DNA from: Oculina patagonica
Lineage: Eukaryota
Direction of reading: 5' to 3'
DNA length: 64,000 nt
Assembly: GCF_052425735.1 (NCBI RefSeq)
Contig: NC_135759.1
Span: forward strand, 22,196,001 to 22,260,000
Shown here: positions 15,529 to 62,974 of the stretch, piece by piece
How positions within the stretch are numbered: the first letter of the stretch is position 1
Layout: every line of letters starts with the position of its first letter
Program-made: the position numbers and the translations under genes
Notes under the pieces: model-generated
Databases searched by the model: none
What the model was told of the DNA's origin: nothing
The model's input: the letters and a program-made list of their open reading frames with translations, nothing else

Positions 15529-16596
15529 TTACTTGAACAACAGGTAATTTTTCAGCATGAATGGAATTTCCAAACTGTTTACTTTATCAGCATATCCAGT
15601 ACAAATTGTTTTTCGAACATGACATCGGCATAAATCTTGAAGGGACCTTGGGTTACATTTATAGTCAAACAGTTTTATGACCTTTTCTTCGCAGACAATT
15701 AACTGGCCTTCGTGGTTTAGTCTTATTTGCCCTCTGGGTTTTACATCTGATGCAATCAGATGTGCATTGCTGCCTTCTGTCGTTGACTCAAGCAACACAA
15801 TTTCACTTTTATTAGCAATGATCAGGTTTTGTCCATCATGAACAAGTCCGACGGCATCAATGTCTTTTCGTTCACCATTTAGCACATAATATGTGATTTT
15901 GTCTTGTTCCTGGATCTCTACTTTCCCTTCAGAGTTCGAGCACACCTTTGCACTTGATAAAAAGGGCAGGTAAATAGAAAACGTTGTTACCTTGAAATCC
16001 GGAGAACAGCATAACGGATAAACTCCCCATTCAGCTTCCTTTTCTCCAGGAATAATTTTTCTAGATTTGAGGACCTTTAAATTGTCCCAGTCTATGAAGA
16101 TTTCATAAACACCCTCGCCACCATTAAATGCATTTGTGACAAGAAGATTCCCCCCTGGAGACAAAGCGATCGCTCCAGGGCAAGTCATGGGAAGATCTTT
16201 GTCTTCTATTACAAGTTCAGCTGTAGAATCTTCATCTTCGTCATCTTCTTCGTTATCTATGTGGTTATCTTTGTCCCCTTTTACAAATTCGGTTGAATTA
16301 GATTTGACACTTCCAAGGTTATAGATCTCTATACTTCCCCCATGATGTTCTTCTGATAAGCTTACTGCAATACGATTACCTGGTACAAACATCGTGTCAC
16401 AGAAGTTGTTGCCGAAGCCGGTAAATTCAGCTACTACTTCTCCACTCACAGGGTTCCAGACGGAAACATCGTAATCGAAAGTCACATACAAATCCAAAAC
16501 TGGGTTGTAATCAACTCCGTATGTGCTTCTTTCTCTTGTTGGAATTTTAATCTCTGAGACGCAGTTGTTCGGAATAACCTTCGTTTGTGCGGCCAT
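15529..16596 (-). CDS. Intronless NHL-like beta-propeller protein with C-terminal SOCS box (paralog A), 355 aa
   Basis: Start reassigned to the ATG at 16596 (MAAQTKVIPNNC) by alignment with the paralog at 61886. C-terminal PRSLQDLCRCHVRKTI...VNSLEIPFMLKNYLLF is a SOCS box. Blade-like segments PGAIALSPGGNLLVT and PRGQIRLNHEGQLIVCE; acidic loop. Confidence 0.88.
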   Translation of the reverse strand: MAAQTKVIPNNCVSEIKIPTRERSTYGVDYNPVLDLYVTFDYDVSVWNPVSGEVVAEFTGFGNNFCDTMFVPGNRIAVSLSEEHHGGSIEIYNLGSVKSNSTEFVKGDKDNHIDNEEDDEDEDSTAELVIEDKDLPMTCPGAIALSPGGNLLVTNAFNGGEGVYEIFIDWDNLKVLKSRKIIPGEKEAEWGVYPLCCSPDFKVTTFSIYLPFLSSAKVCSNSEGKVEIQEQDKITYYVLNGERKDIDAVGLVHDGQNLIIANKSEIVLLESTTEGSNAHLIASDVKPRGQIRLNHEGQLIVCEEKVIKLFDYKCNPRSLQDLCRCHVRKTICTGYADKVNSLEIPFMLKNYLLFK

Positions 16597-26346: not shown

Positions 26347-29300
26347 CTAAGCTCTTTTCTTGCTCGTCCTAAGTGATAAAGACGCGCCAGTAAAGAGTCT
26401 TGCTAAACCAAATATTGGAAGCAAGAAGATAATAAAAGCCATCATGATAACATAATGACTGATGCTTGTTCCGATATCCAGCCAGCTACCGCTATCCTGC
26501 ACGAGGTAAAAGAAATGCAGTCCCATAAGATCCGTCATGGCAAGAACGACCAACACTAGGCTTTGAACTGGGATCGATAAAACTACGTGTATAGCGTCGA
26601 ACGCGCACGCTACAATCACAAACGGAATGAGGACTTTACAAAGCAGTAAAGCGCCCATGACAAATGGTGAAAATACTGTTAAGAAGCAGTAAACGGACGC
26701 AGGGTCAAAACTGTTAATGCTTGCAATGTTTCCTGTTCCGAAGAACGCCACCACGATGAAGAACACGAAGAAATATGCGCAACGAAGGTCTTCTAAAGTG
26801 AGCTTTCTAATGAGCGGGGTGTCGATGCCTTTTGTGAGAACCTTCCAAGCCGGCTGGTGGGTTGTCGTGGCATCTTCGTTGCTAAGTTGCGTTTCTAACA
26901 GTGCATTGAGTGTTTTTCCAGATAGTTTATGTTCAGATAACAGCCACGCACCCATCAGCAGTGAGAGAACTAAGAGAAACAGACCCTCATAAGCAGTACT
27001 CATCAGCAAATACACCGAGGAAAATGCGATGGCAATGCTTGACAGCCTGATGGTTAAATTACTAGAGTTGATTAGCGGAAGCAAAAACGACGAGAGGAAA
27101 ATTGTCCAACTTCCAAGTTGGTTCACCACTGGAAGACCAAGTTTACGCTGCAGACTTGATGCAGTGCTGTTTACAATATAAACCGCGAAGCCCGTAAGTA
27201 GCGCTTGAGGAAGCAGTATTTTACATGATTTTGTTATTTCCGTCTTGAGCAGTTGTGAAATATTAGAGGCATAAAGCAGCAAAGATGCAAAAGCAAGCAA
27301 CGTTAAAACTCCTGCAGCGGTCACTAAGAAGTAGTTCGCCTCGCGTCCGACCACGGGAAGAACAGGAAATACAGAGAGAGCGAAGCTAAGAACCATCCAA
27401 CACACCACCGTCCATTTGCAGTTTGTGTACAGTGGAGTGCTGAACGGCCACAAAGCAAGGCACAAAAGACCAACAGACAGAATCTCTCGCCTGAAGAAGC
27501 TCATCACAAGAATCTCTAACGAAAATACACCAAACAAGACCGTAAATAACACTCGACGTTGCAACTGCTTTGCACGGATATAGTCCAACACGGCACGAAT
27601 CACGTGAAGTCTCTTCGCAATGCGGTTCCAAAACACCAACGGCATCAAGCAGTAACTGTAATACATCCACGGTGCTTTCTGAATCAATAACAAAAGAACA
27701 AAAAGAAAAGCGAAGGCACAAGATGTAGTGTCTATTAATGAAGCCTTTACCAAGGGATTGAAGCCTCTTTTGCTGAGTTTAGACGCCTCTTTCATAACGT
27801 CGCTGTGCTCTTCAATAATCTGAAGCACAATACAAAATACCCATCCAAGAAAGCCAAGAGTAACCACTAGATTCAAGAACACTCTGTCATAGTTTTGATA
27901 GTAATTGAGTCCTTGTAACGCAAGGTTTATTAGATCTCTGCTGAGGCTGTCTGCTTCTTTATACTTCTTGGCTCGCATGAACTCCTTGATGTCACGAATC
28001 ATTCCTGTTTTCTTTGCACCTAAAGAGTAAACAACAGAAAAACAACGGAAAATTGTCTTAGTTTTGACCACTTTACAGGGCTGACTCACAACAATCATTC
28101 CTTTTATTTTCCTTTGCTGTTCGTTTATTTTGCTTGTTCCACCATTCTCTGTAAACTGCTTAATATAATGCAGTCTGGTCTAAGTCCCCCGCAAAGTGTT
28201 GTAAAGCGCATTAAGCGTGTGGATTTGCGCCACATAAATACCGTTATTATTATTAATTTTTTTAATATGAGGGGAGTCTAGAGCAGACTAGAAGTGGGAA
28301 CTACTGTTTTAAGTAACCTTCCCACCCCCCACCTCTCCGCTGAGGCTCCCCTGAGGAGCAGAGAGATCGAAATCGGAGAAAGAGCAAATATGGGAAGAAG
28401 ATCCCTTGCGCAATTGCTTTTTCTCCCTCCCCAGCCTCCACGGGCTTTATATTTCTCTCTCCCCAATCTCCCTACAATTTAATCTTGAAAGTACGCTTAC
28501 AAAGAAAACTCTCCTCCATGTATCCCGGTTGGGGGGGGGGGAGGGGGTACTCAAAAAAGTTTTATACGGGGAGGCTCTGCCCCGAGGTCCAGCCCCATAC
28601 CATTTTCTATACCATTTTAACAGAAAAGGCACTTCTTTCATATACATTTTATTGAAAAAAAGGTACCCCTTTCATATACCTACATGATACGACATACATG
28701 TATACTTAAAACAGGACGTTTTCTTGACATTTTTATGTAGCGCTTAAAAAATTAACACGATAGAGCCATAAGTTGCGTCTGTTCGAAATCTTTAATCTAA
28801 AGGCCCCTTAAAATATCTTCATGACAGAATTTCCTACCCTTTCATATACCTAAACTTGTGAAATTCCTACCCTTTTATATACCTTATTACATGAAATTTT
28901 CGCGACACGTTAATTTCGCGATTTTGAGGTGTGCATATTTCGCGACACTTAAATTGCGCGATTTTGCGACAATTTTGATTTTGAATCACTTAAATTTCGC
29001 GTTTTTGGGTAAGACACAATTTACATTTCCTTGGCAATATTAATTAACATGCCCTTGAATTAAATAAAACGACTTCATCAATGGAACAATAACGTCAAAA
29101 TAAACAAAAACGTAAGGGCGTGACTAAATCTCGGCAATAGCAACAACAGAGCAGTTCTCACAATGTCTACATGTAGGTCATGCTTAATGCATGCTTGTAC
29201 GTGCATGAGTTATTGTTCTTGAGTCATTGATGACAACATCCATTTACATTGAAAATTCCTCCCTTCAGTGGTACTAAACACCTCCCACCAATGTGGCCCT

Positions 29301-36332: not shown

Positions 36333-38234
36333 ATGTCAAAGTTAGCTCCCGCAATTGGAATCGACCTTGGAACAACTTATTCCTGTGTTGGAGTATTTCA
36401 ACATGGCAAAGTTGAAATCATCGCCAACGACCAAGGCAACCGAACGACTCCAAGCTATGTCGCCTTCACCGAGTCGGAACGTTTGATCGGCGACGCTGCC
36501 AAGAATCAAGCAACATTAAACCCAAGCAACACGATCTTTGATGCCAAGAGGCTGATTGGGCGGAAGTTCGACGATCCGTCAGTACAATCTGACAGAGAGA
36601 ACTGGCCTTTCCAAGTCATCAATGAGGCTGGGAAACCTAAGCTCCGCGTGGAGACCAAGGGAGCGTGGAAAACTTTTACCCCCGAGGAAATCAGCTCCAT
36701 GGTTCTGACCAGGATGAAAGAGACAGCTGAGAATTACCTAGGCGAGACAGTCAAAGATGCAGTGATCACAGTGCCAGCTTACTTCAACGATTCTCAGCGA
36801 CAGGCCACGAAAGACGCTGGACTGATAGCAGGGCTGAATGTCAAGAGAATCATCAATGAACCAACCGCTGCCGCCCTCGCTTACGGCTTGGAGAAGAACC
36901 TCAGCGGAGAAAAGAACGTGTTGATTTTCGACCTCGGTGGAGGAACTTTTGACGTCTCTGTGCTGACAATAGACGAAGGATCGTTCTTTGAAGTACGCTC
37001 CACGGCTGGAAACACACATCTCGGCGGTGAAGATTTCGACAGTCGCGTCGTGGATCACTTCGTGGAAGAATTCAAGCGCAAGTACAAGAAGGACCTCAAA
37101 AGCAACCCGAGAGCCTTGCGTCGCCTGAGGACCGCTTGTGAACGAGCCAAGAGGACCCTGTCTTCTAGTACTCAGGCCAATATAGAGATCGACTCATTGT
37201 CCGACGGAATTGATTTCTACTCCAGGATTACCCGCGCGAAATTTGAAGAACTGTGTATAGATCTCTTCCGTTCATGCCTAGAACCAGTGGAAAACGCACT
37301 AAAAGATTCAAAGCTTGAGAAATCTCAAATCCATGAAGTGGTTCTGGTTGGAGGCTCTACAAGAATCCCAAAAGTACAGCAACTGCTAGAAGACTTCTTC
37401 AGTGGCAAACAGTTGAGCAAGTCAATCAACCCAGATGAGGCGGTGGCATATGGGGCCGCAATCCAGGCAGCAGTTTTGTCCGGTGATCAGAGTTCCGAAA
37501 TCAGAGATATCTTGTTGCTCGATGTTACACCGCTAAGCCTCGGGATTGAAACCGCTGGCGGAATGATGACCAATCTAATCGAACGCAATACCCGAATTCC
37601 AGCTTCCGTTTCAAAATCAGAGTTCTCAACCTACTCGGATAACCAAACAGCAGTCACCGTTCAGGTGTTTGAAGGCGAGCGGGTCATGACCAAAAACAAC
37701 AATCTGCTGGGGCGATTTGATCTGACTGGAATCCCCCCTGCACCGCGCGGCGTGCCGAAGATCGAAGTCACCTTCGACATCGATGCTAACGGAATCTTGA
37801 ACGTTTCCGCCAAGGATGCGAGCACTGGAAAAACCAACACTATCACCATCACCAACGACAAGGGAAGGCTGTCTAAAGCGGACATTGAGCGCATGGTAGC
37901 TGATGCTGAGAAGTATAAGGAAGAAGACGAGAGGCAACGTGAGACGATCGCTGCAAGAAACAGCTTGGAGAACTATGCATTCAGCGTCAAACATGCGGTA
38001 GAAGATCCAAACGTTGAGGACAAGCTGAATACTGACGATATAGAGATGGCGAAGAGCAAGGCACAAGAAGTGATCGATTGGTTGGACAGGAATTCAATGG
38101 CAGACAAAGAAGAATATCAAGAAAAGGAGAGAGACATGCAAAAAGTGTGTTCGCCAATCATGAGCAAGTTACATGGGCAGCAACAGAACACAGACAGCGC
38201 TTGCAATGGACCCACGCTTGAAGAAATTGAATAA
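36333..38234 (+). CDS. HSP70: Cytosolic HSP70, intronless (inducible type), 633 aa
   Basis: Signatures [37 protein letters not shown] and RAKFEEL; no signal peptide; C-terminus GPTLEEIE. Confidence 0.99.
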
Positions 38235-44717: not shown

Positions 44718-47700
44718 TTAAAATGTTCTGCCGAAGATGACTGTATCCGGAGGTGCTGGTTCCTTGAGAGGAATATTATAGAATCCTAATTTGGTGTAGA
44801 AGTCCAGAGCGTTGTTGTTGGTGGTTGCTATCTCACAGTGCACTCCCGTGCATTCTTCAGCCTTCAGTGCTGACAGAACACAGGCTAACAGCCGGTTGCC
44901 AAGCCCAAGGTCCTGTCAGTAAAGCACAGAAATGAACGCATGAACAAACAGGCAAACAAACAAAACATGAACAACAAACAGAGGAACACATCAACAACTA
45001 ACTTATTTGTAACCACTGAATTAAAATGTGTTTCTTCGTTGATAAGTTCTACAAACAAGTACCTTAACGTGATAACAGCTACAGTGATTGCGCAATGTAG
45101 TGTATCAACATTAGCATAAGTAGTTAGCAGTAAGTAAAAATTACATCAAAGTAACACATCCGACATAATGGTAGATGTTTTATTTATTCCAGACAGCACA
45201 ACCGACGGCTTCAATTTATATCGTGTATAAATTAGCCTGTGTACACCCCCCCCCTTTTCAACGTTTTTTTGGGCGGGGGGGGAAAGAAAAAGGAGAAAAA
45301 ATGTTATCATTGTATTGTGTTGTCATGCGTTTTATATATGAGTCCCTATATCAGCATGTGAGGGTAACCTCGTCCCACGCATGACGTGAGATTGATTGAC
45401 CTTACACCTGTTTTACAGGCTGTGAAAGGCTATACATAGGCTATCCACAATCTTATCAACACAAGCCTTCCACCTTTAATCACTAGCTGTGATAAACATT
45501 AAAAATAGTGCTTTATTGAAAAACAGTGTATTCAAACCTGTGCACGAGGAAGAAGGTAGATCTGTACATGAGCACTAAACTTTAAAGCCAAGTCTTCAGG
45601 GAGAAATATCTTTGGACTGTGAAAACTGCTGGCAAGTTGTTCAGCATAGGTCCACTCTGATGAATTTCCCTTCGGCTTTTGGTATTTCTTGCATACCTAA
45701 GAAAACAAATTTAATTTCAAAAAATACATTTCTTACTGACCAAGCATGCAGGCTGTACTGGAGAGTGAAAAGGCAGCAGGGAGACCCAGAACAACCTGGA
45801 GGAGGAGAGAATGCAGTTGGGATGGTGTGGCTGGAGTACTAAGAGCGGTAACCTGGCTGAGGAGGAGTGAAACAGAATGTTGCGACATTATGCACCTACA
45901 GGCACAAGGGAAAACATTTCGATGATAATGATGATAAACTATAGTACTGCACAAGAGATTTCAAACGGTGTATGTAAAAAATGTAACAGCTCAGATTAGC
46001 GTATATATTTGTAATCATATTTAATATTCCGGACAGAATTTCATCACTGCTGTTACAGACATGTCACTCAATAAGTAATTACTTACATGCATATACATAT
46101 TTCTTACTGACCAAGCATGCTGGCTGTACTGGCCCTAGGTTTTAACAATACGGATATAATGCAGCATGGTCCATACATAAAAGACTTTGGGCCAATATTC
46201 TCCCATGGTCCCAAGCAGCTGGTCCAATAGTTGAAGGGCTCGGTGGAAAAAGAGCAGTTGTGATTTTTGGCTGAAAACTAACATCGCCGAAACAACTCCA
46301 AATTTCACACGTAGGTTTGTTTACGTCTACAAAACATTGTCCTGTTTTTATTTCCGCTGGGTTTTGCTTATAAATTTTTTTGAGAAATATCGTATGCAAA
46401 ATACCCGGTTTGTCCAGTCTGCGTCTTTGGAGTTCCTTTGTTAATGGCACTTAAACAAACAGGGCTGCAAATAATTTTTTACACTTGAAAGGAGATATGT
46501 CCTACTAAGGCTCCATCTTGATCGGACAAAACAAAATTTTGGTCAGACATCACCAAAAACAAAAGGTTGAATTTTATTCATTGTTGCCGTAAAATGATTT
46601 ATGATTAAAAAATTGTTTGGACATCATGTCCGATCACACTTGGGATTTTGTCTGACATGAGCAAATTTTGGTCGGCCAATGTCTGATGACCGACTGTTAT
46701 TTGCAGCCCTGAACAAAGGAATTCCTAAAGATGCAAGTTGCTTGCAAATGTTATTCCTAGGAAATGAAACAGAAGCCAGCAAAAAATAAATATAGTCACA
46801 TGATTAACACATGTCAACAAACCTGAACGCAAAATTTGGAGTTTCTTTCGAAATGTTCATTTTTTACAATTGCCAAAAATCACTAACACCCTTTTTCCAC
46901 CAGAATCCTTCAGTTAGAGAATATTGGGCTGGCAATAAAGCATTTTGATTGGCTGATTATAGTCATTCGTTCTCTCAACTGTTTTAGTCAAGTAATAAGT
47001 ACACTCAATGGCAAGGCTCCAATGTAAGATCAGAATTATGTAAACTACTACTGAAAATCAGTAATAGGTAAGTTTTTTTTGTACAATATACCTCTGGAAG
47101 CCAGTGTTTCTTGAACTGCTCATAAAAGTGTTTTGAATCAGGAGCTGCTACTGCATAGCCACAGATGCCATCCCCATCCTCCACCACAAACACATGTTCA
47201 GGACAGATCTTCAGATAGGGACCAACAAACCTAAATAATCGATTTATAAACAGTAGACAATCACTAACGTTCTCATCCCCCCCCCCCCCCACCAAAAAAA
47301 AAAAGGAAACCTCGAGCCATGCAGCCTAAACTGCCAGAGCTTATCCCTGTTTCTGTAGCATTAAGCAGCTAGGAATATTTCTTGTCCCCCCTGAATGGGA
47401 TGCTATTCAATCGTAGGGATTCCCCCCCCCAGCATTATGTTGCCGATACCCATTTACACACCTGGGTGGAGAGGGGCACTATGAGAGTTAACTGTCTTGC
47501 CCAAAAACACAACACAAGTGACCTTGGCCAGGGTTTGAACCTGGACCGCTCAATCCAGAGTGCAATGCACTAACCATTAGGCCACCATGCCTCCAATTCC
47601 CCTCAAAAAGGTAAGCTGTAAATGTTACATGTAATGTACCAAATAGCATGCAGTAGAAACTCAGTTACTGCAGAGTCAGTTATTGATACTAATGACTAAC

Positions 47701-50700
47701 CTGTCTCCTGCCATGTTGAATTGTTTGCAAGGAAATAAGTCATGTCCATCTTCCCAGTCATCACATGTTGAAACACAAATTTCATACAAGGATTTCTGCA
47801 AAAAAAAGGCACAAAAACAGGCATGAATGATGATTTGTAGTTCCACTGCTTAAGTTTTGTTTTTCGGGTGATGAGACGATCCTTGCACAATCTACACGTA
47901 CTTGTGAGTAAGACACCACTGTGCAGAAAAACTTACAGATCATGTAAAAGAAAAGTACTTTCCTAAACAAAGGACACCAACTAGGTGGATAATTGCATAC
48001 ATATTTTACATTACCATCCAAAGTATAGTGACTTATAGTGGCTGTTACAGTGCCAAAAGTTGCTTTTGAACAAAGTACTTCTAGATGTACTTTACTACAA
48101 ACAATCTGTACCTCGTCTTCTGTTTGGTACGGTCTGATTGTGTAGATACATGTTGTGGGAATTTCAGGAGCTCTTAAGTTGAACACTTCATGCCCTCCAT
48201 CTATAGGTAAGAGTCTCTGCAAGCACAATACACACTAACAATCAAAACACTTGACAGTGATACATGCACTCACTCTCTCAACATAATTTTTTCAACATTT
48301 TGGATGAACTTTCTCAACATCAATCAAGACTAAATTACTTTCACTGATTTTTACTATGGTCACTAATCAACAAGAATGTCTCTAGTGTTCATGTTTTCAT
48401 GTTTTTAGTTTATAAGAGTGCAGGATAAACAAAATTTAATCTTATAGCTCAGGGCTTATGTTCTTTCTTCCTTAGGGGCACATCCTACACAGATTATCTA
48501 TTGTAGGAAATTAACACTCCATAAAATTAACATGATTTATTAAAAATTGCGTTTATTTAAGGAAACAATATCCTTCTCTTCTCTATGCACCATTTTTCAG
48601 TCTTTAAGATGTAAAAGCCTTAAAGATTGTCATCTGCAATTTTTTCCAGTTTATTCTTGCTTTCAGAAGAGTGGTACAGCAGCGAAAATATCTTTAGAGT
48701 CATCACAAATCGTGCTAATTTACTTCATTTAAAGAAATTTTCCCTCCAATTCGCATTAATTTAAGTCGCATTTGTTTCAAAGACCTTAATTTAGGGAAAT
48801 ATAAATCTCTTTTAATAAAGTATAAAATCTAGTAAACAAAACGTTTTCTACAATTCATACTGCAGCAAAACATGCAACATACCTGCAGTTCTCCACATAA
48901 ACCTCCTCTAAACACCCAAGGTTCTGGATCTTCTGGGAAAAAACTTTGCCCTTTTTGTTTCTTCCTCTTGTTTTTTGTGCTAAGCCAATTCACAAACGTG
49001 TCCAGCAACTGCAAGACTTCCTTAACATCCCACACATACGGATAAAGATCATACAACAATGCTCTGTTGGAAGTCTCAGTTAGTCTCACAAACATCTCTC
49101 CTACAGACCGACAGATCTCATGGAATTTCTCAGCTCTGTCATTCCACTCGGTTATCTGGAATACAGCAAAATAATAACCTTGATAAGTATGTTTACCATG
49201 ATCCATCACATCACTGGGAAATTAAATTTTTGTGACCATTTGCTAGCCCAAAAGTCATTTTCACTAGCCCAAAAAATCCTCATAAGCATGATAAATTTCC
49301 TCCAAAAAAAAATTCCCGAAGATTTTCACTTGCCCGTCAGGTAAGTGAAGGATAAAAATATTAATACACTAGCTTGACTGCAAAATCCACTAGCCCCGGG
49401 CTATCGGACTAATACTTCTTTGCATGCTGCTACAGTACAAGAGACCAGATGTAACTGCACCGTGATGGAGGTGGTTGGATGGTGGTTGGGGAGTAAAAAG
49501 GCAGCAGGGATACCCAAAACAACCTTGAGAAGGAGAGAATGCAGGTGGGATGATGTGGCTGGAGTACTAAGAGTGGTAACCTGGCAGAGGAAGAGTGAAA
49601 CAGAATGTTGTGGCCTTGTGGATCTATTGGCACAAGGAAAAACAGTGATGATAATGATGATGAACTGTAGTGCTGTACAAGAGATTTCAAACGGTGTATG
49701 TAAAAAATGTAACAGCTCAGATTAGCGTATATATTTGTAATCATATTTAATATTCCAGAAACAAACTCATCATTGCTATTACAGACACATCACTCACCTA
49801 AGTACTTACTAACATGCAAACTAACTTACAAGCTTGGGTCTGAAAGGGTTTGAAACCATACCTTAGATTTCTGCTCTTGTTCAGTAAGTTCCATAAACTC
49901 TTGTGAATCCTCTTTGATTGCATTGAACTTGAGCCATTTGAAATCAGATATGATCTGTTTGGCTTTCTGACCATGGTTGTATGGTAGATAGAATAAATCC
50001 ACCAGCAACAGAAGGTCTTCAACACTCAGTGGTGTCATGGCAGGTTTTTCCTTCAGTTCACTTATCTCCATTGGCATCTCTTGCTCTTTCTTTGCTGTGT
50101 TTTCATCTTTCTTTTCTAAAATTGCAAAGAAACTAGTCATCATAATGGTATTTCAATGTACAAGAAAAGTAGTTTTCTGACAAGTTTGTAAAACCAAAAC
50201 AAAAACAGCCACATCTTGCCCCCAGGGGGGTACTACGGCTTGTAAATGACAACGATGATCAAAGGATTTTTTTGGGTTAGAAATTTTTGATTCTGGGATT
50301 TTTTTGGGTAAGAAGATTTGGCAAGTATTTTTTTGGGTGACTTGATTCAAATAGGGGATCTCTTTGGGTATTAAAAACAAACTAAAGTGATTTGGCACGG
50401 CCTTGGCATATTTATGGTATGATGAATAAACAAACACGAGCATTATTGCCCCTCCTAGCAATATAGGGGTAATTTGGCAAGGGATTTTTTTAGGAGTTAT
50501 TTTTGGTCCAGGGATTTTTTGGGGTAATGTCGGAAGAGTTAGGGATTTTTTTGGGACCTGAGTTTTGCCTTCATTCGATCATCCCCGTCATTTACAAGTC
50601 GGAGTACCCCCCTGGGATCTTGCCATGCACGACACAAACACAAACTTAAGAAGAATCACTGTTTTGTTGTTTTTGACGCAACAGTTTGTCTGCTCTGACT

Positions 50701-53700
50701 GGCTATGGCATTTGGCACAATTTCACAATGCAAAACCATAGCAAATAGAATTTAAGTGTGTATAATAATTTTTACTATCAAGTGCATGTACCTCCCTCCC
50801 ATCTATTCCTTGCCATACCCGTCCCCCTAAAAGAGCTGAATTAGAGCCACTTTCAAAACAGAACTTTAACAAAAACCTGTTTTACAAGTGATCTTTCTTT
50901 AACAGCTTTAGTTATTACAATGTTTAACCAGAACTGGCCAATACATGCATGTCTTATGAGCATCATTCTCATATCCTTGGTACTGAATCTGTACATTGTG
51001 AGACAGCTCACAAAAATAAAATAAAATCAGCAACTATACCCTGATGCACCACTAAATTCAAAGAAAAACAACAACAAATAAAAGATATGCCTGGCAATTA
51101 TTAAGGGGCATTTTCAGCTTAAGACCTGTCTAACTGGTGAATATGTAATATGTGAACATATAACTTAGAGTGAGTGACTTCTACCTCTTACCTGAGGATT
51201 CAGAAGAAGAGGTACTAAGCTTTTTCCTACTGTTTTCCTTTGCAACCTTTATTGGCGAAGGAGTCACTACAGGTGAACACACAGAGGTAGTGACATTTGT
51301 ATGTGATGTTCCCATGGGAGCTTGCACAGGAATTGGCATAGCCTCAGGTACCATACTGTAGGCACCACTCTTGGCATAGGTTCTGGATGTAGCATGCTTT
51401 ACTTTAGAAAATTCTTCCAACCAGGCAGACACAGCCTCTCGCAGTGCATTCTGTGGATTATAGTTTGTGCGAATAGTAGCACTCTTAGATTCACTCAGTG
51501 ATGCACCACTTTCTGTCTCCATTTCACCTTCGACCTTGACACTTTCACTGTCTGTTTCACTAGACATACTGTCTGGAGAGACTTCTTGATCAGCTTCTTT
51601 TGCAGCATTGCTACTACCATTACTCTCAGTACTAGCAAGCAGATCCTCTTCCATGGGCTCACCTGAATTACTTAACTTCTCAGCTTTTAGATCAATGCTC
51701 ATTGGTTCTTCTACAGTGGTCAGTGAGGAATCTCTTAGCCATGAACCAAGAGTGTGGACAGCAATAAAATTACTTTCAAACTCACAATTAGGGTTTGTCA
51801 GCACACCATTTAGCATGGGGAAAAGCTCGCCTGGCCTCCCATCATAAGGCCCCAAGAAGACTCGCCGCTGATCATAGTCATTTGCATGAATGTTGTCCCA
51901 AATAACAGGTTTCCGTTTAAGCACAGTTGTTAGGGCCTCAATAGTTTGCGTGGTAATCACTTTGGAGACTACCTTTGGACCTAAAATGAGTGAAGTAGCA
52001 ACATAAGAATGATGTTGTGTCAAGTGTGACAACACATAGTACACAGACACATGGGCTGCTATATACAGGCACGTCTAGTCTTTCTTTCCCAAAGCCAGCA
52101 TTTATATTTAACACTCTGTTTTCAAAAAACTGAATTGCTAATTGCCAAGAATAAGAAACTAACCAACTCAATTTAATCCATGCAATCAGAAGTAAAGGAT
52201 AAATCCAGTGAAGCTTAAGATCACTGTAATATAATTTTCCAAAAGTAGATCTGTTTTCTGTGGCATTGAGAATTGCATAGCCGCAGTGCAGTAAGCGGCT
52301 AAAGTGGGCTCTTAACCTTCACTGAACTTAGCCCCTACCCTGCAGATGTTTCAAAAAGGCAAATATCATTTTATTGAATATATTCAAAGTTAGGTCTGTT
52401 ACAGTACAGTCAATCAATTTTGAGTCTAATCAATAATTTTACATCTCACAATATTCATCAATCAGCAAGGTAGTTTTTGTACAGGAATCATTGCCAAAAC
52501 TTTTGTTCCATATTAAAGATTGAAAAGGACAAAACCTTTACTCTTTCATAATCTGGATTTCTCTTTTACACAACAGCTAGTTCTTTTCACACAAACATTC
52601 ACAACACAAAATAAAACATGTTCACTGGTCACTCACTATGACAACAACTACTACTACAATCACAGAAAACACAATTAAGACACACAAAGAGATTTTTATA
52701 AGGCCATTTTGCATAATAAATTGACTCTGGCACAAGTGGGTAAATTGACTCTTGTTCAAATTGTTTTCTTCCAAATATCTGTTTTTCCACTTTTCAATTG
52801 GGCCGGAGCCTGTTATGATGAGAATGGTCTTATGTAAAAAAATTCTGTTTTCAATAGTATTGTTCTTTCTTTTAAAGTGGAAACTAAACAAAGTTCACAA
52901 GAATTTTGAACTTTCCTTGTTTTAGTAATTTTGAGGAGGGTAATTTTAGAATTGCATTTGTCTCTGCAAATTTTTATCCAAGAATACTTTTTGCAAGAGG
53001 TGAATTAAACACCTGACTGTATTTCCAACTTTTTTAGAAAGAACAAAAAGTGAAAACAGGATTATGCTGCAGGTTGCTCATAAAACTTAGACAGCCATTC
53101 TTTGCCACTAAATAAAACCACTCTATAACAAATTAACTGATAAAAGCATTTTTATAGTGTTTCCACCGATAACCATAGAAACAGTTAATGCTGGAGATCC
53201 AGATTCTTCTGTAGCTGTAGCAATAGGTTCTTAAACAGATTATTGCCTTCTTTTTAGGTCAATTGGAGAGTGTTTTAATTCATTGTACCAAGGATATGCC
53301 ATTTAAATGTTACAAGCAACCAATTTTGACTGTTGATAGTTGTTTCTTTGCAGTAACGTGTTTTTAGAAAAAAAAGAAAAGAAAAGAATCCAAACATTTA
53401 GGGCAGCACATATGAAAAGCAGGGGGTGCGAGACTGCAAAGGCGCCAAGACTCAGTCATTACTAACATTAAAGGTGCCAGTAAATGATTTCTCATGGAAA
53501 CTGCAAAGAACACTGCTCAACAGTTCTTTACGCCGAAATGGATGCAGTGAGCAAGAAACATTTAGGTTTATGTTTCTTGTCGGGAATAATTCATGGAGTT
53601 TATTTAGCTGTATAAACCTGACAGAGTTCCAGAAAAAGTGAAGGTTTTGTGCAACAAAGGTATATTGTTACAAACTGTTTTTGTTGTTGTTTTTTTTGCA

Positions 53701-56700
53701 AAATGGTGATAATGTAAATGCAATGAATTTTCTTATTAGAAAAGATATTGTTCAGTACACGAAAATTTATGTTTTATTTTTCATGACTGCAAAATACAAA
53801 CCAAACCTGGAATATACAATATTATTGTTCATTGTGCACATTTATCAAGCACATTCACAACATGCTCACAAGATTACATTTCCTGCTATTCAAGGAAAAT
53901 ATTTTGTTATATTTTGACAAACTTGTGGCAAATCTGTTTCTTTCTAGAGTTTCCCGAATTACATTTTCTCTCTCATTTGCACACAATATTTCAAAGGCTG
54001 CAGCTGCCCCATGAAAAACTTAAAAAGGTTGTTAACTTGAAATTTTAAATCATTTTTCATGTTTTCACTGCCAATCAAACAATCACTGTTGTTCACATTG
54101 ATATGCACTCCAGAACTTAATAAAAATCTATTTAACAAAACAGGGGGTTGATCCTGTAAGCACGTTGTAGGTTTAGTAATGTTTATTTTATGAACAAGAA
54201 TTTTTCTGAGTTGGTTAATTTGTTTACATTTTTAGTTTGATCATATGCTTGAGCTGTTTATTTTGGTGATATTTATAGATCAAACTTCTTCTGATCATCA
54301 TAATCATCAAGTGTCAGAAGAACTTTGATCTGCTGGATTATGAACCCTACACATGAAACCATGGATATCTGAAGATTGCTCGATCCTGAAAGGCTGGCTG
54401 GCTGGCAGGAAAGGAAAAACTAAGATGCAACTGTACCTTCAACCAAGCATAGAAGAAGCAGGCTAGGATTTGTCCCTCACCACACTGCTAAATGAAACAG
54501 GACATGTTGACAACAAAACCAGCATTCATCAATGATAAATCAAATCAAAAGTCAAATTCACAAAATAAAAAAATTAAAATAACAATATTTACCTGTCCAC
54601 ATAATGTTTATCTTCGGGTTAAGCTTATTCCCCAAGGTAATAAGGTAGTCTGAAGTCTCTACAGTTGGAACAGCTCTAGTACCACAGTACTCTACACACA
54701 TGAAAGATCAAATCAGTTTACTAGGTGAAATACCAAAAATGATCTAATAAATGCCCGGGGCATCTATTTAATTTTAGGGGTCCGAGGAGGGGCATTAAAT
54801 ATGAGACGTTTATTAGAGAGAGGCGTTTAATTCACTTTAACTGTAACAACATCAAAGAAACAAATAAGATGTGTAGCTTGCTTGCGGAGTAAAATAGAAA
54901 ACAGAGTTTGCGAGTAGGAGACTAATCTATTCTTCGCTAATGCAAGAGATGTCGTTCATAGTTAATTGATATCGATGTCTTCATCGTCATCAGGGTCAAC
55001 CATATTGGCATTGTTGGCGTCTTCAATGTCCGATTCAAGCAAGAAACTAAATAAATTGCGTGATTTTACTCTATGGCTTGGAGCATTGCCTTGGTTTTTG
55101 AGGAGATTCTTGGAAGGGGCGTTATTATACACAAGGCGATTATTAGGGGGGGCTAGTACAAACTTAACAGCAAAGAGGGGGCATTTATTAGATACAAGGT
55201 GTTTATTTGAGAGTGGGCGTTTATTAGATCATTTACGGTACACTATATTACAAGTAACTGTGGTGCTCAAGGTTGACTAAAACAGGTGTTTCTGTAGCAT
55301 GACATCTCCTTCCAAGCATTATCTTACATTGCAAAAACCTCTGTTAAAAATGTTTCTATTTGTAACATTATTCAGAGGTGTGTTATATTCAACTACACAA
55401 ATAAAATACTTATTCTCTATTGTACAAAACAATGACCTTGCAGAATGTGTATAGAAGTACTGCATGGCAAGTTTACAATGAAAGGGAATTTACCTGTTGG
55501 ACAAAAGAGAAAGCTTGGACATCCCAAGTGTTTGTATACGTTATTGGTGATTTCCACCTGAGCATCGCCAAATGTACTAAATGCTTCAAGATCAGCACCA
55601 TGTAGCTGTGGATCAATGTCATCAAATAACAAGGCAAATGCCGCACAACCAAGCTTTTGAACCTGAGAAGGGACCATCAAATTAATACAGTTTGCATTCA
55701 CTGATAGTACTGAGACTGTACAAGCCAAAATAAAAATGCTACACTTCCAGTAGAAATGACCTGCACATAATAATTGTTGATGATAAAAAATTAAGTAATG
55801 ACTTCTAAAGGACATCGGAACATTTGTGTACATTTTAGTGAATACATGTATATGCGTTGTAGGTCATATTGGTTTTCAAGTTAAATGTTTCTAACCTAAA
55901 GAAAACACTCTTTCAAACACTTAATGCAATTTACATTTATTTACTAGGGTTTTCTTTTTAATGAATTCAAATTGTTTTATGTTATTCTTAATGTTTCACC
56001 TTCAGATTAAAACATCTTAAACAAAGCTAGAAAACTTGGAAAACAATTTGATCTACAAGTCATGTGAATGAACTACATATATAAACTAATGACTTGATCA
56101 GGGTTGTCGCTAAGAGCCGGTTGCTGGCTAATTTCACTGGCTGAAAGAGAACCTAAAATCCGGATAAAATTCACATTAAAACAAAGACTTACCGGTAGGT
56201 AAACTTTTAGAGCTGCCAATGCCATAAAGGCCAGCTGGGCTTGTTAATGACCCGGCTCAGCGTTTTCTTACCTACATCCTTGCTTGATTATAGCACAAAT
56301 TACAATGAAAAAGAAAATATATATATTACCTGGTCCATCTTCTTTTTGAGCAGCTGAATGTCTCTTGAGTTTGAAAACAAAATATCAAGACCAGGAGATA
56401 AGGCATAGTAGAATGTTATCCCACATTCCTTTGATGATGCAATAAGCTGCTTCAAATTTTCTGTTGAGATATAAATTAAATAATTCAGAGAAAGTGAGAC
56501 ACTAAATAAGAGGAGTTGTGTCTCACTGCATGGCTTGATTATCAGACCCAAAACACACAGTCAAATGTTTGGCATATATGTACATTTCACAATCATTCTG
56601 CAAATCATGTGGAATATCATGCAACACTTAGTAACAAGGGCGCAGGCCGAGTGAGCTAAAATCAGTCGATATTCTGCAAGATTGAACAGGATTATTGTTT

Positions 56701-59163
56701 CATAATTCAACATATTTTCAACAAAATGCATTTATCAGCTAGATAAACCATGCTTATGCAGCGATTACACAATGTCAGTTCAATCTTGGCAAGCTACATA
56801 TATCACAGGATACCTATTATGGAGAGATAACACATAACAAGGACATTCTGAGCATACATTGTGAAAATTTATTGAATAATAAGTAAGTTTATTTTTCCTT
56901 GCACTGCAAAATGCCTTCATGCATCCATCAGCTACCATAAAGATAGAAAAATGATACCAGAAACCAATAGTCTCTACATTACGTAACCATGTTTCAACAT
57001 AGAGCAGTTTTCAATTGACACATTTGCTTTGGTTTTGCATTACAACGATTATTGATTGGTTTAAAAATCTTGCGCCACTTTCTTTACCAATCAGGAGTAA
57101 AAACATCACACATGTCACATGTTTCCTGCACTTCGCATTGGCTACATGTATTTACTTTGAGTTTAAATTGGAATTTGGTTCACTGAATCATCTGCGTCTT
57201 TTGTGATTAGCCAGAATGATTACTTTGGTTTTGGTTTTACGACACTCAAATAAAAACTGCTCTATGAGCTCATAATTAAGGGATTTCACACCAACTTAGT
57301 TGGTGATTACTGCAACACCTTGGTCTAATTTACCTGTTTCCTCTGGGCTGTAAAGATCCCTCCACAGAGCTCTGTGTTTGAGATCATCTTTGGGAGCATA
57401 CAAATAAGTATTCATTCCCAGACTCTTTAACCTAGTACAACGATATGAAAAGTAGTCCTGTTACATAAATCTGGTATACTGAAGCCCCATACTATATGAC
57501 TTAATTTTTTAATACATTGAAATCCCAGATAAAGAAGTGTCAAGATACTGGAAAAATGCATTCATTATAATGGGGCTGGTTATACTGGGGACCTGTTATA
57601 ACTTTGGCCAGGCTGAAGAATATCCTTCATTACACTGAGGAGTTCATTATTCATATAGGGGCTCCACTGTAAATAGGGTGGCAAAGGGTTTGTGCGTGAC
57701 ACTTGATGGCCCCTAAATTTAGCAGCGTGATGTGTGATGGAGCCAAAATAAGTCATATGACGTGGGACTGGACATTATAACATGATGTTGGACATTGTAA
57801 CGTGATGCTTTATTTTACAAGCTTGAGACACTTGATTTAGATTTTTGCAATAAGTGAACTTCCTTTAACTTGCAGAAGAATATCCTTCAAAGTAAAATAC
57901 AGTCTAAATGGAGGTCAATAAACTGTAGCAGCCCCAACCCCTTTTTCTGGTTTTTCAGGGTACATTCAGTAGCGATTCCAACAAACAGTAAGTTGCGTTA
58001 GACGTGTATGTCTAACAAAAACTGTCTGCCGTTTGGGGCAATAAGACAAGTAAAATTAATAATTAACACCCAAACAATCCAAGTTCCCACCAAAAAAGTG
58101 AACAGGAAGGTACATACCTATTTTAAAGTGGTGCATGAGTTAATTTGAAACTTCAATGTGATGCATGCCCCCCCCCCCCCCCCCCCCCTTGCCACCCTCT
58201 GTAAACAATACCCAACACATTTCTAGGGTTTATTGGCTCAATCAACAGCATATTAAATATGAAAGAAGTTTGAATACTACAGGCTAAACTTGCTGAAACT
58301 GGAAAGTGATCTGCAAGATTTTTAAACAACATAAATGTCTTGTCTGATACTTATATCAAATTCTTACGATGACTACAAGAGTCTGGAAAGTAGTCTTCTT
58401 GAAAAAAAAAGTTTGTTTCACGACCCATTTGATAAAAATTATTATACAAAAGTATAGTACTTCTATTGTTCATACATGGTACACTTGATTGAAATGGTTT
58501 TTATCCTGCGAGACAAACCATGAAAAGGCAAAACACCATAACACAGGTTTGGCCATACATGAACTAAGCTTATTAAGCTTACCTCATCACAAACATAGCT
58601 GTGAAAAGCAGATTACTCAAACTCTAGACAAGTAGACAATTAAATTCACGCTTATCTTTTTAAAACCAGTCTATGCGTGTCAAATTGTACCAAAACACAT
58701 ATATTTTATATCTCACTTCTAGAAGTCATTATTGCCCAACAAAACACATCCCCAGGCTTAAAATTAACAACTTATTAACTTATAATAAAATAAAAAAAAC
58801 CTTGCAAGTATAAGCTTAAGTTTAATTTTGACGTCGACATTAAAGACGACTCAAAATATATAAGCTTGAGCTTGAAGTTAAACTTGAATGTGTAATTTTT
58901 TACCTCACAAACAACTCTTTTCGCTGTTCGAACGTCCACGGTCTTCCATAGAAACCTATTACAAACAAAAGTAAAAAGAAAAACCATTTAATCTTCATAA
59001 AAACAGCCATCGATATCGGGGAAAATAGCTTGACTCGGCGTAAGAAAGTTGCTGGGCCTTTTCGTTCAAGATCGTTTCATCAACGCACAAAAGAAATCCG
59101 TTGACCTTCAACAACTCCGCTGAGAAACTCCTCAGTCTTATCTTTAGACGTATCAGAAGTCAT
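44718..59163 (-). CDS. OGA: O-GlcNAcase (GH84 domain + stalk + C-terminal GNAT-like domain), about 871 aa
   Basis: 14 GT-AG exons: 59106-59163, 58904-58955, 57334-57431, 56330-56460, 55494-55662, 54593-54691, 51192-51980, 49862-50115, 48883-49155, 48112-48216, 47701-47795, 47092-47230, 45538-45696, 44718-44912, total 2616 nt. Motifs [19 protein letters not shown], catalytic [33 protein letters not shown]. An in-frame upstream ATG at 59244 is an alternative start. Confidence 0.96.
45982..46057 (-). ncRNA. Box C/D snoRNA, copy in OGA intron 12
   Basis: TGTAACAGC-A-GTGATGA (box C) ... CTGA (box D)-GCTGTTACA with a perfect 9-bp terminal stem; intronic and on the host strand. Confidence 0.75.
46460..46711. 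mobile_element. hAT-like MITE
   Basis: TIR CAGGGCTGCAAATAA / TTATTTGCAGCCCTG; TSD not clean. Confidence 0.7.
47330..47594 (-). mobile_element. tRNA-derived SINE (same family as 31575-32008)
   Basis: GGAGGCATGGTGGCCTAATGG...GGTTCAAACCC head plus the shared body. Confidence 0.8.
49708..49783 (-). ncRNA. Box C/D snoRNA, copy in OGA intron 8
   Basis: TGTAATAGC-A-ATGATGA ... CTGA-GCTGTTACA; the 3' half is identical to the intron-12 copy. Confidence 0.75.
50221..50616. mobile_element. Poly-G-ended DNA transposon, 8-bp TSD ATCTTGCC
   Basis: CCCAGGGGGGTACT ... AGTACCCCCCTGGG; TSD at 50213-50220 and 50617-50624. Confidence 0.88.
54731..55240. mobile_element. TA-flanked MITE
   Basis: TACCAAAAATGATCTAATAAATGCCC / GGGCGTTTATTAGATCATTTACGGTA inverted ends with GGGGCRTTTATTAG subterminal repeats. 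Confidence 0.75.
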
Positions 59164-59475
59164 TGCAACTCTTTTCTTGAATCCTACGGGGAGTTTAAGC
59201 TTTGAATTCTTGAGAATACGAACTCGACCAGATAACGCCTTCATTGGTACCCGCTCATGAAGACGCTCATGAACTGAGTTGAGAGCAAAATTCGGATTAT
59301 GCGCAGTTTCACCGCAAATCACGTTTTTCCGGTTTTCACAAATATCCCCGCGAAATACGCGCGTCACGCGAGACCTGTCTAGTGTCTAGTTGAGTTGTTG
59401 CTGTCTGCGTTCTGCCTTTGCTCTGCCCGAGTAATATGGTGGCAGTTCAGTACTTCTCGAGTTTTCTGCTTGGTA

Positions 59476-61885: not shown

Positions 61886-62974
61886 ATGGCCGAACACGCG
61901 AAGGTTATTCCCAACAACTGTGTTTCAGAGATTAAAATCCCAAGAAGTGTGGGAAGAGCACACGGAGTTGATTACAACCCAGTTTTGGACTTGTATGCGA
62001 CTTTCGATTACGATGAAAGAGTTTCCCTCTGGAATCCTGTGAGTGGATCAGTGGTAGCTGAATTAAGAGGCTTCGGCGCGCTCCATGACCCGTTGTTTGT
62101 ACCAGGTAATCGTATTGCAGTAAGCTCATCAGATTTATATGCTCAAAGAGATATAAAGATCTTTGACCTTGGACAAGTCATACCTAATTCAGCCGAATTT
62201 GTAAAAGGAGACAATGACAGTGACAGAGAGGACGAAGGCGACGAAGAGGAGGACGAGGACGAAGATTCCACACCTGAAATAGTAATAGAAGACAAAGATT
62301 TTCTCATGGCGGATATGCCTGGAGCGATTGCTTTGTCACCAGCTCCAGGAAGGAATCTTCTTGTCACAGATACACATGGAGGGTGTGTTTATGAAATATT
62401 CATTGACTGGGACACTTTAAAGGTCCTCAAATGGAGAGAAGTTTTTCCAGAAGACGAGGAAGTTGAATGTGGAATTCATCTGCTATGCTGTTCTGCGGAT
62501 TTCAAGGTTACAATTTTTTCTTTTGACCTGCCCTTTATATCTACTGTAAAAGTGTGCTTGAACTCTGAAGGGAAGGTAGAGTTGCAGGAACAAGAGAAAA
62601 TCACATATTACATGCTAAATGGTGAGGAAAAACGGATTGACAAGAATGTAACTGGACTTGTTCATGATGGAGAAAACCTGATCATTGCAAATGAAGGTGA
62701 AATTGTGTTGCTGGAGTCAACGACAGAAGGCAGCAATGCACATCTGATTGCATCAGATGTTAAACCTACAGGGCAAATAAGACTAAACCATGAGGGCCAG
62801 TTAATTGTCTGTGAAGAAAAGGTTATAAAGCTGTTTGAGTATAAATGTAACCCAAGGTCCCTTCAAGATTTATGCCGTTGTCTTGTTCGAAAAGCAATTT
62901 GTTCTGGATACATTGATAAAGTAAACAGTTTGGTAATTCCATCCCTTCTAAGAAACTACCTCTTGTTCAAGTAA
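61886..62974 (+). CDS. Intronless NHL-like beta-propeller protein with C-terminal SOCS box (paralog B), 362 aa
   Basis: Intact ORF collinear with paralog A; SOCS box PRSLQDLCRCLVRKAI...VNSLVIPSLLRNYLLF; TATAAA at about 61779. Confidence 0.9.
   Translation: MAEHAKVIPNNCVSEIKIPRSVGRAHGVDYNPVLDLYATFDYDERVSLWNPVSGSVVAELRGFGALHDPLFVPGNRIAVSSSDLYAQRDIKIFDLGQVIPNSAEFVKGDNDSDREDEGDEEEDEDEDSTPEIVIEDKDFLMADMPGAIALSPAPGRNLLVTDTHGGCVYEIFIDWDTLKVLKWREVFPEDEEVECGIHLLCCSADFKVTIFSFDLPFISTVKVCLNSEGKVELQEQEKITYYMLNGEEKRIDKNVTGLVHDGENLIIANEGEIVLLESTTEGSNAHLIASDVKPTGQIRLNHEGQLIVCEEKVIKLFEYKCNPRSLQDLCRCLVRKAICSGYIDKVNSLVIPSLLRNYLLFK

Follow-up and report, generated by a model that had tools for sequence, protein, structure and literature searches.

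We analyzed a 64,000-nucleotide stretch of the Oculina patagonica genome (assembly GCF_052425735.1, contig NC_135759.1, positions 22,196,001 to 22,260,000; hereafter the window) and found in it a complete O-GlcNAcase (OGA) gene whose C-terminal domain carries the P-loop signature of GNAT acetyltransferases, Q842-D-L-G845-L-G847, which fits the consensus [Q/R]-x-x-G-x-[G/A] and lies at the start of the helix following β4 (residues are numbered throughout from the ATG at 59244, i.e., in the 906-aa form). [quoted passage not shown] The human domain was described as a pseudo-acetyltransferase for want of a P-loop (Rao et al. 2013, PMC3814719; He et al. 2014, PMC3919268), and a 2025 Nature Communications paper concluded that eukaryotic pseudo-histone acetyltransferase (pseudo-HAT, pHAT) domains cannot bind acetyl-coenzyme A (acetyl-CoA; PMC12494797). 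Judging from its sequence features, we give an even chance to the coral domain still binding CoA or acetyl-CoA, probably weakly, with the site serving regulation and not catalysis. No paper on the OGA tail domains of cnidarians, sponges, or ctenophores was found, which does not prove their absence elsewhere, the sponge and ctenophore species not having been targeted.

The cofactor-site residues were compared with those of OgpAT (OgAT) from Oceanicola granulosus (3ZJ0) and SsAT from Streptomyces sviceus (4BMH), two members of the GNAT subfamily bearing α1-α2 and β3-β4 insertions, to which the coral domain is alike. The coral shares with both the LLPRAQ segment before the loop and the G-x-G within it, its six loop residues corresponding to Q143-G-R-G-V-G148 in OgpAT and Q195-G-R-G-Y-G200 in SsAT, whereas human OGA has T852-D-P-S-V-A857. 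In motif B, the Asn that bonds the pantetheine is Asn874 in the coral and Asn175 in OgpAT, whereas the human protein has Asp884, and Asp fills this column in 201 of the 218 OGAs surveyed below. Tyr881 corresponds to Tyr182 of OgpAT and Tyr891 of human OGA, and Lys883 occupies the position of OgpAT His184, a contact of the 3'-phosphate. Near the pantothenate, Thr721 matches OgpAT Thr25 in place of human Met735, for which a clash has been proposed. The coral, human, and OgpAT proteins agree in the distance between the loop Gln position and the motif-B Asn position, 32 residues. The homologous position of the loop, together with its sharing with sponge, ctenophore, and bacterial homologs, argues that the motif match is not due to chance. 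Among the hallmarks of a pseudo-HAT, the absent P-loop consensus does not apply to the coral (human Pro854 and Ser855 being replaced by Leu and Gly), and neither does the clashing Met735; the Asp beside the pyrophosphate site, human Asp853, is present as Asp843, being Asn in a close coral relative (contig L002).

The coral domain remains recognizably the counterpart of the human pseudo-HAT (residues ~700-916; PDB 5m7r, 6hki, 9qen), to which it is orthologous, with the same place in a multidomain protein. The coral-type domain aligns with it end to end at 156 bits, gap-free around the loop, and the two have in common the Asp at loop position 2, the equivalents of Tyr891 and Glu879, and two family-specific insertions; besides the residues named above, they differ at human Lys844, which is Gln in the coral. 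OgpAT and SsAT are stand-alone proteins with Gly-Arg at loop positions 2-3 and an H-x-H-I-D motif (His135, Asp137), whereas the coral domain, which is fused to a GH84 domain and a stalk, reads Asp-Leu in the loop and carries Gln and Tyr in place of this His and Asp. The presence of GNAT motifs A and B in the coral and their absence from human OGA had been proposed in an earlier note on this DNA, and both the alignments and the Pfam searches agree with it; the human strings KKVTDPSVAKSMM and DKRILEFY and the bacterial LLPxxQGxGxG, as given in that note, are correct against the PDB sequences.

Pfam GNAT models likewise detected the coral domain and not the vertebrate one. Exon 14 alone scored 26.5 bits against Acetyltransf_1 (PF00583), above the cut-off of 20.7 bits, and the tail domain of a Pocilloporidae-cluster ortholog (Logan transcript P0186), 92% identical to that of the window, reached 40 bits with PF00583 and 40 bits with PF13508. 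Whole-tail Acetyltransf_1 scores were 40 bits in stony corals, 41.5 in a JGI sequence (P0192), and 38 in a sponge, 26 in a brittle star and 24-25 in two sea anemones, and 17, below the threshold, in a hemichordate; neither a third sea anemone nor the vertebrate tail domain gave an Acetyltransf_1 match. Against OgpAT and SsAT, E-values were 1e-25 for the coral-type domain and 1e-15 to 1e-18 for the hemichordate one. The P0186 domain was also modeled with AlphaFold2, ligand-free and from a 33-sequence alignment that included bacterial-type sequences, which gave a mean predicted local distance difference test value of 89 with a strand (156-162) followed by a helix (171-185) around the loop. Foldseek matched this model to the OgpAT-acetyl-CoA complex 3zj0 with a root-mean-square deviation (RMSD) of 1.8 Å and a template-modeling (TM) score of 0.92, to SsAT (4bmh) with an RMSD of 2.2 Å, to the Trichoplax pHAT (6r45) with an RMSD of 2.9 Å and a TM score of 0.88, and beyond these to dozens of CoA-bound GNATs at a probability of 1.00. 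The predicted structure is compatible with acetyl-CoA binding, which is a statement of compatibility and not of binding itself. The four extra residues in helix α5, cited for Trichoplax as a barrier to binding (PMC12494797), were considered and rejected as such a barrier, given that OgpAT binds with the same 32-residue spacing.

The gene itself was modeled by combining tblastn, using four bilaterian OGAs, with the enumeration of in-frame GT/AG pairs, and spans 44718..59244 on the minus strand in 14 exons that form one unbroken frame with GT-AG introns throughout (table 1). Every exon of the GH84 domain was covered by tblastn with the four OGAs, and the domain includes the catalytic Asp-Asp motif; the least certain junction is the exon 7 donor, the sole in-frame candidate found there. 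Two in-frame ATGs, at 59244 and 59163, would yield 906 and 879 aa, respectively. Since the N-terminus MKALSGRVRILKNSK read from the former is conserved in the annotated Pocillopora, Stylophora, and Montipora orthologs, it is the likelier start, and the protein probably comprises 906 aa. Its full-length identity amounts to 86% with the OGAs of Pocillopora meandrina and Stylophora pistillata and 82% with that of Montipora, and its tail domain aligns with human OGA 690-915. The window gene is a stony-coral ortholog of protein O-GlcNAcase, exons 13 and 14 are its 3' end, as the earlier note had assigned them, and the C-terminal domain has the GNAT fold and is the ortholog of the human pseudo-HAT.

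The P-loop is divided by intron 13, and the QDLGLG motif would be an artefact if the splice junction were wrong or the gene copy nonfunctional, which we regard as highly improbable. Such copies do exist in another coral assembly: at 5200-14600 of contig L005 (ENA ERZ26692634), the OGA 3' exons occur twice in tandem as partial pseudogenes broken by in-frame stops and frameshifts. These pseudogenes adjoin HSP70 and TMEM121-like genes, and the DLGLG motif is still recognizable in them. The window copy, however, has an uninterrupted 14-exon frame and canonical splice sites. At the junction between 45538 and 44912, which the earlier note had singled out for confirmation, the donor reads CAG/gtttga after 45538 and the acceptor ctgacag/GAC before 44912, both in phase 0. 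The one alternative in-frame junction, with a donor after 45568, would remove the β4 strand, whereas the chosen one gives a gap-free alignment with human OGA 803-915 and with OgpAT. Exon 13 aligns with OgpAT through Gln143, the OgpAT segment 'AHGHIDLLPRAQ' matching the exon end and stopping exactly at this first P-loop residue, and exon 14 aligns with the G-Y-G of SsAT. A phase-0 GT/AG intron occupies the identical codon boundary in four other anthozoan contigs, and LLPRAQDLGLGKRLL runs uninterrupted through annotated or transcript orthologs (Pocillopora, Stylophora, Montipora, and Logan assemblies). Homology, intron position, and contiguous orthologs hence bear the junction out. Further against an artefact or pseudogene, the ratio of nonsynonymous to synonymous substitution (dN/dS) between the window and contig L002 was 0.066 at a dS of 0.51 over exons 11-14, and the OGA-HSP70 neighborhood is syntenic in contigs L002 and L005. 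This substitution pattern indicates that the tail domain is under strong purifying selection and is therefore functional in some sense, which holds equally for bilaterian pHATs.

The distribution of the loop was surveyed in 218 full-length OGAs retrieved by two database searches and cluster look-ups, scoring the six aligned loop columns. Cnidarian sampling comprised Hexacorallia and two anthozoan-like lineages, with no named medusozoan or octocoral OGA among the top 120 matches listed; for lineages P0015 and P0004 the fragments begin downstream of the loop. The full consensus [Q/R]xxGx[G/A] was found in seven of the 218 sequences: as QDLGLG in the window protein, Montipora, and the Pocillopora/Stylophora cluster, as QGLGVG in the homoscleromorph sponge Corticium candelabrum (XP_062505490, P0187), as QGKGMG in the ctenophores Mnemiopsis leidyi (KAL5269181) and Bolinopsis microptera (XP_063683569) and a related transcript (P0180 cluster), and as QGKGVG in the JGI sequence. 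It occurred in none of the ~205 bilaterian OGAs of the survey. The vertebrate form TDPSVA was recorded 96 times, arthropod and mollusc loops followed x-D-[PQS]-[SA]-V-[SPA], and partial loops (EDKGVA, EDTGVV, QDVGVT, and DDPGVA) were seen in echinoderms and amphioxus (P0188, P0189, P0137, and P0121; Amphiura, Acanthaster, Holothuria, and Branchiostoma). Hemichordate OGAs retain the motif-B Asn, and this, together with the half-kept deuterostome loops, argues that loss within Bilateria was stepwise and not a single event.

Among cnidarians, the conservation that the earlier note had made a check of its reading holds in part. Stony corals retain the Gly-x-Gly, including Q/NLGLG in contig L002 (the stroke marking the intron position), as does a second anthozoan-like lineage with H/SLGIG (L001, L003, and L004, the last being GCA_949826985.1). 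None of the three sea anemones examined has kept it (Nematostella RDHFLA, Actinostola QDHFLM, and Actinia QMHFPM), and annotation shows the sea-anemone OGA genes as intact and coding for full-length protein. A metatranscriptome fragment (P0005) reads RISGLG. Position 2 is Asp in 212 of the 218 OGAs and nearly invariant where the glycines are lost, whereas lineages keeping the Gly-x-Gly have D, N, S, I, or G at position 2 and Q, H, or R at position 1. Such variability at the x positions is as expected of a loop binding through backbone amides, and the contrast between free x positions and a near-invariant Asp suggests two functional regimes, although the loop-keeping sample is small. The H-x-H-I-D motif is kept solely in the sponge, the JGI sequence, and OgpAT-type stand-alone acetyltransferases, the His135 equivalent being gone in the ctenophores, all cnidarians, and the bilaterians surveyed.

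The OGAs of Corticium, Mnemiopsis, and Bolinopsis are, like that of the coral, full-length animal OGAs whose tails carry the full consensus, and they differ from it in having fully canonical loops without the Asp; the sponge additionally keeps H-x-H-I-D with the proposed catalytic His. By sequence, the sponge and ctenophore proteins are better acetyltransferase candidates than the coral OGA. Used as the query of a region-limited word search, the ctenophore tail domain matched three proteins, and an ESM Atlas search with the ctenophore domain returned bacterial GNAT clusters only (score 0.91, no taxonomy), a weak lead. The Trichoplax adhaerens pHAT (6R45, 9QEP) is likewise a nonbilaterian OGA tail of the same fold; it differs in lacking the P-loop (...SSVPE-KVIKR..., with a one-residue deletion) and motif B with its Asn and FY, and it does not bind acetyl-CoA (PMC12494797). 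The Trichoplax domain therefore cannot stand in for the ancestral form.

A maximum-likelihood tree of the OGA tail domain grouped the stony corals with support of 100/98-99 and joined to them, in a clade supported at 100/99, both the H/SLGIG lineage and the sea anemones. Bilateria formed a separate clade (100/99), and sponge, ctenophore, and bacterial-type sequences fell outside both. Given the support for the cnidarian clade, the coral and sea anemone domains are orthologous, and the loss of the glycines in sea anemones is secondary and lineage-specific. Replacement of the coral domain by a bacterial one through horizontal transfer was also considered and rejected, as the corals nest with sea anemones at 100/99 and the intron positions are shared. 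Because the loops of sponge, ctenophore, and bacterial relatives are canonical, the comparison identifies the intact loop as the ancestral animal state, in line with what the earlier note had supposed, and points to its degradation on three or more occasions, namely in Placozoa, in Actiniaria, and, step by step, in Bilateria. The change from Gly to Asp at position 2 is common to cnidarians and bilaterians and absent in the sponge and ctenophores.

In the binding proposal, the coral domain keeps the ancestral cofactor signature, consisting of the P-loop, the motif-B Asn, Thr721, a basic residue at the 3'-phosphate position, and the spacing of OgpAT. CoA or acetyl-CoA would be held through the main-chain amides of the Gly-x-Gly turn, at an affinity probably below that of OgpAT because of Asp843, and the role of the domain on OGA would be to bind a ligand or to regulate, and not to serve as an efficient acetyltransferase, since Gln and Tyr stand at the equivalents of OgpAT His135 and Asp137. 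Several observations weigh against this proposal. Asp843 falls in the same column as human Asp853, which was placed adjacent to the pyrophosphate site (Rao et al. 2013, PMC3814719), so that the caveat raised in the earlier note about this residue was apt; the OgpAT mutant G144D/R145P/G146S, in which the Asp is one of three exchanges, lost binding (PMC3814719). By surface plasmon resonance (SPR), the pHATs of human, mouse, chicken, zebrafish, Drosophila, Caenorhabditis elegans, and Trichoplax showed no acetyl-CoA binding (PMC12494797). The proposed general base of OgpAT, His135, is replaced in the coral by Gln834, and Asp137, which bonds the pantetheine NH, by Tyr836 (His in Pocillopora). The structural model, moreover, is that of an ortholog, ligand-free and built from an alignment including bacterial-type sequences, and the glycines might have persisted because corals evolve slowly or because the loop serves another ligand.

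In a rival account, which we consider possible but less likely than not, the coral domain is a nonbinding pseudo-HAT like those of other animals, serving only protein or histone binding and dimerization, and its P-loop is a slowly decaying relic disabled by the Gly-to-Asp change. The Asp shared by 212 of the 218 OGAs has been blamed for repelling the pyrophosphate (PMC3814719), seven of seven tested eukaryotic pHATs bind no acetyl-CoA (PMC12494797), the His135 and Asp137 equivalents are gone, the sister sea anemones lack the glycines and yet have OGAs annotated as intact and full-length, and G-x-A remnants such as EDKGVA and DDPGVA persist in echinoderm and amphioxus domains that group with other bilaterian pHATs. 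A relic, however, sits less easily with the retention of Gly-x-Gly in two of three anthozoan lineages while the adjacent x positions changed, and in each of the two deep branches of stony corals covered here (Montipora vs. Pocillopora and Stylophora), nor is the Asp fixed where Gly-x-Gly is kept, being Asn in a close relative, Ser in a second lineage, and Ile in a third. The consensus loop is absent from all seven SPR-tested species, and the negative SPR data therefore do not bear on the coral sequence type.

At the other extreme, the coral domain could be an active acetyltransferase and its OGA truly bifunctional, as the old name NCOAT implied; on the residues present we consider this unlikely. 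Motifs A and B are complete, the Pfam GNAT scores equal those of the sponge and bacterial relatives, and the acceptor-tunnel insertions are present in the predicted model. Glu869 is kept, and its human equivalent Glu879 is a possible counterpart of the Naa50 base (Rao et al., PMC3814719). Catalytic residues being poorly conserved among GNATs, neither this Glu nor the exchanges at His135 and Asp137 decide the matter. The proposed OgpAT base and Asp137 are nevertheless Gln and Tyr in the coral, H-x-H-I-D survives only in the proteins listed above, Asp843 probably weakens cofactor affinity, and OgpAT itself is only a putative acetyltransferase whose acceptor is not known. Of the suggestion in the earlier note that this OGA might be a bifunctional O-GlcNAcase/acetyltransferase or an acetyl-CoA sensor, the part concerning the motif is upheld, and the part concerning a bifunctional enzyme is weakened by the exchange of His135 for Gln and Asp137 for Tyr. 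Binding as a regulatory ligand site, at an even chance, is the reading that we retain for the coral domain.

Table 1. Coordinates of the OGA gene and of other features in the window.
Feature	Coordinates	Strand	Details
OGA exon 1	59106..59244	-	Start codon 59244, alternative 59163; ends FLSGVVE + 1 base
OGA exon 2	58904..58955	-	tblastn and splice model
OGA exon 3	57334..57431	-	GH84 domain; tblastn and splice model
OGA exon 4	56330..56460	-	GH84 domain; Pfam NAGidase 34.7 bits
OGA exon 5	55494..55662	-	GH84 domain; catalytic Asp-Asp motif FALLFDDID; Pfam NAGidase 19.2 bits
OGA exon 6	54593..54691	-	GH84 domain; tblastn and splice model
OGA exon 7	51185..51980	-	End of GH84 domain and acidic, Ser-rich low-complexity linker; Pfam NAGidase 60.7 bits; donor at 51185
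OGA exon 8	49862..50132	-	Linker and stalk; splice model
OGA exon 9	48883..49155	-	Stalk domain; tblastn and splice model
OGA exon 10	48112..48216	-	Start of C-terminal GNAT-like domain
OGA exon 11	47701..47795	-	Carries Thr721 (OgpAT Thr25, human Met735)
OGA exon 12	47092..47230	-	tblastn and splice model
OGA exon 13	45538..45696	-	Ends with β-strand 4 and first P-loop residue; Gln842 codon 45540-45538
β4 segment	45538..45573	-	Gln834 = OgpAT His135, Ile835 = Ile136, Tyr836 = Asp137 (alignment to 3zj0)
OGA intron 13	44913..45537	-	Phase 0, GT...AG; divides P-loop between positions 1 and 2
OGA exon 14	44718..44912	-	Last coding exon; stop TAA 44720-44718
P-loop positions 2-6	44898..44912	-	Asp843-Leu-Gly845-Leu-Gly847; with Gln842, Q-D-L-G-L-G
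Motif B	44781..44819	-	Asn874 = OgpAT Asn175/human Asp884; Tyr881 = Tyr182/Tyr891; Lys883 = OgpAT His184
Dispersed repeat, OGA intron 12	45736-46063	-	Spurious open reading frame (ORF) translation near-identical to that of the intron 8 copy
Dispersed repeat, OGA intron 8	49404-49789	-	Spurious ORF translation near-identical to that of the intron 12 copy
HSP70 gene	36333-38234	+	Intronless; 633 aa; Pfam HSP70 849 bits; convergent with OGA
PigN ORF	26347-28098	-	583-aa single ORF; Pfam PigN (glycosylphosphatidylinositol ethanolamine-phosphate transferase) 428 bits
SOCS-box ORF	61886-62974	+	362 aa; C-terminal SOCS box, Pfam 39.5 bits
NHL-like and SOCS-box ORF	15529-16596		Resembled by the ORF at 61886-62974

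Elsewhere in the window, the dispersed repeat with copies in OGA introns 8 and 12 is probably a transposable-element fragment. The PigN ORF forms an uninterrupted exon that is unusually long for the host genome, and the two SOCS-box ORFs may represent two members of one family.

Seven species, none of which has the P-loop, underlie the conclusion that eukaryotic pHATs are incapable of binding acetyl-CoA, and the sequences collected here form a natural series that runs from canonical loops (ctenophores and sponge) through the consensus combined with the 'human' Asp (stony corals) and half-degraded loops (echinoderms and amphioxus) to fully degraded ones (vertebrates, insects, sea anemones, and Trichoplax). 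It is improbable, in our estimate, that the OGAs of the early-branching ctenophores, sponges, and stony corals still end in a functioning module dependent on acetyl-CoA, or, in the boldest version, in a true acetyltransferase that would make these OGAs bifunctional. On that view, an ancient enzyme would have joined O-GlcNAc removal to acetyl-CoA, the pseudo-HAT of bilaterians would be its fossil, and the coral Q-D-L-G-L-G would be a living intermediate in the decay of the loop. The main value of the series lies in offering natural OGAs able to settle the function of the domain at the bench, as orderable proteins with which the original ligand or activity, the substitution that ended cofactor binding, and the role of the surviving scaffold can be probed. 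Two nutrient-sensing systems would meet if acetyl-CoA were tied to O-GlcNAc cycling in corals, and such a connection would also matter for the metabolism of the symbiosis.

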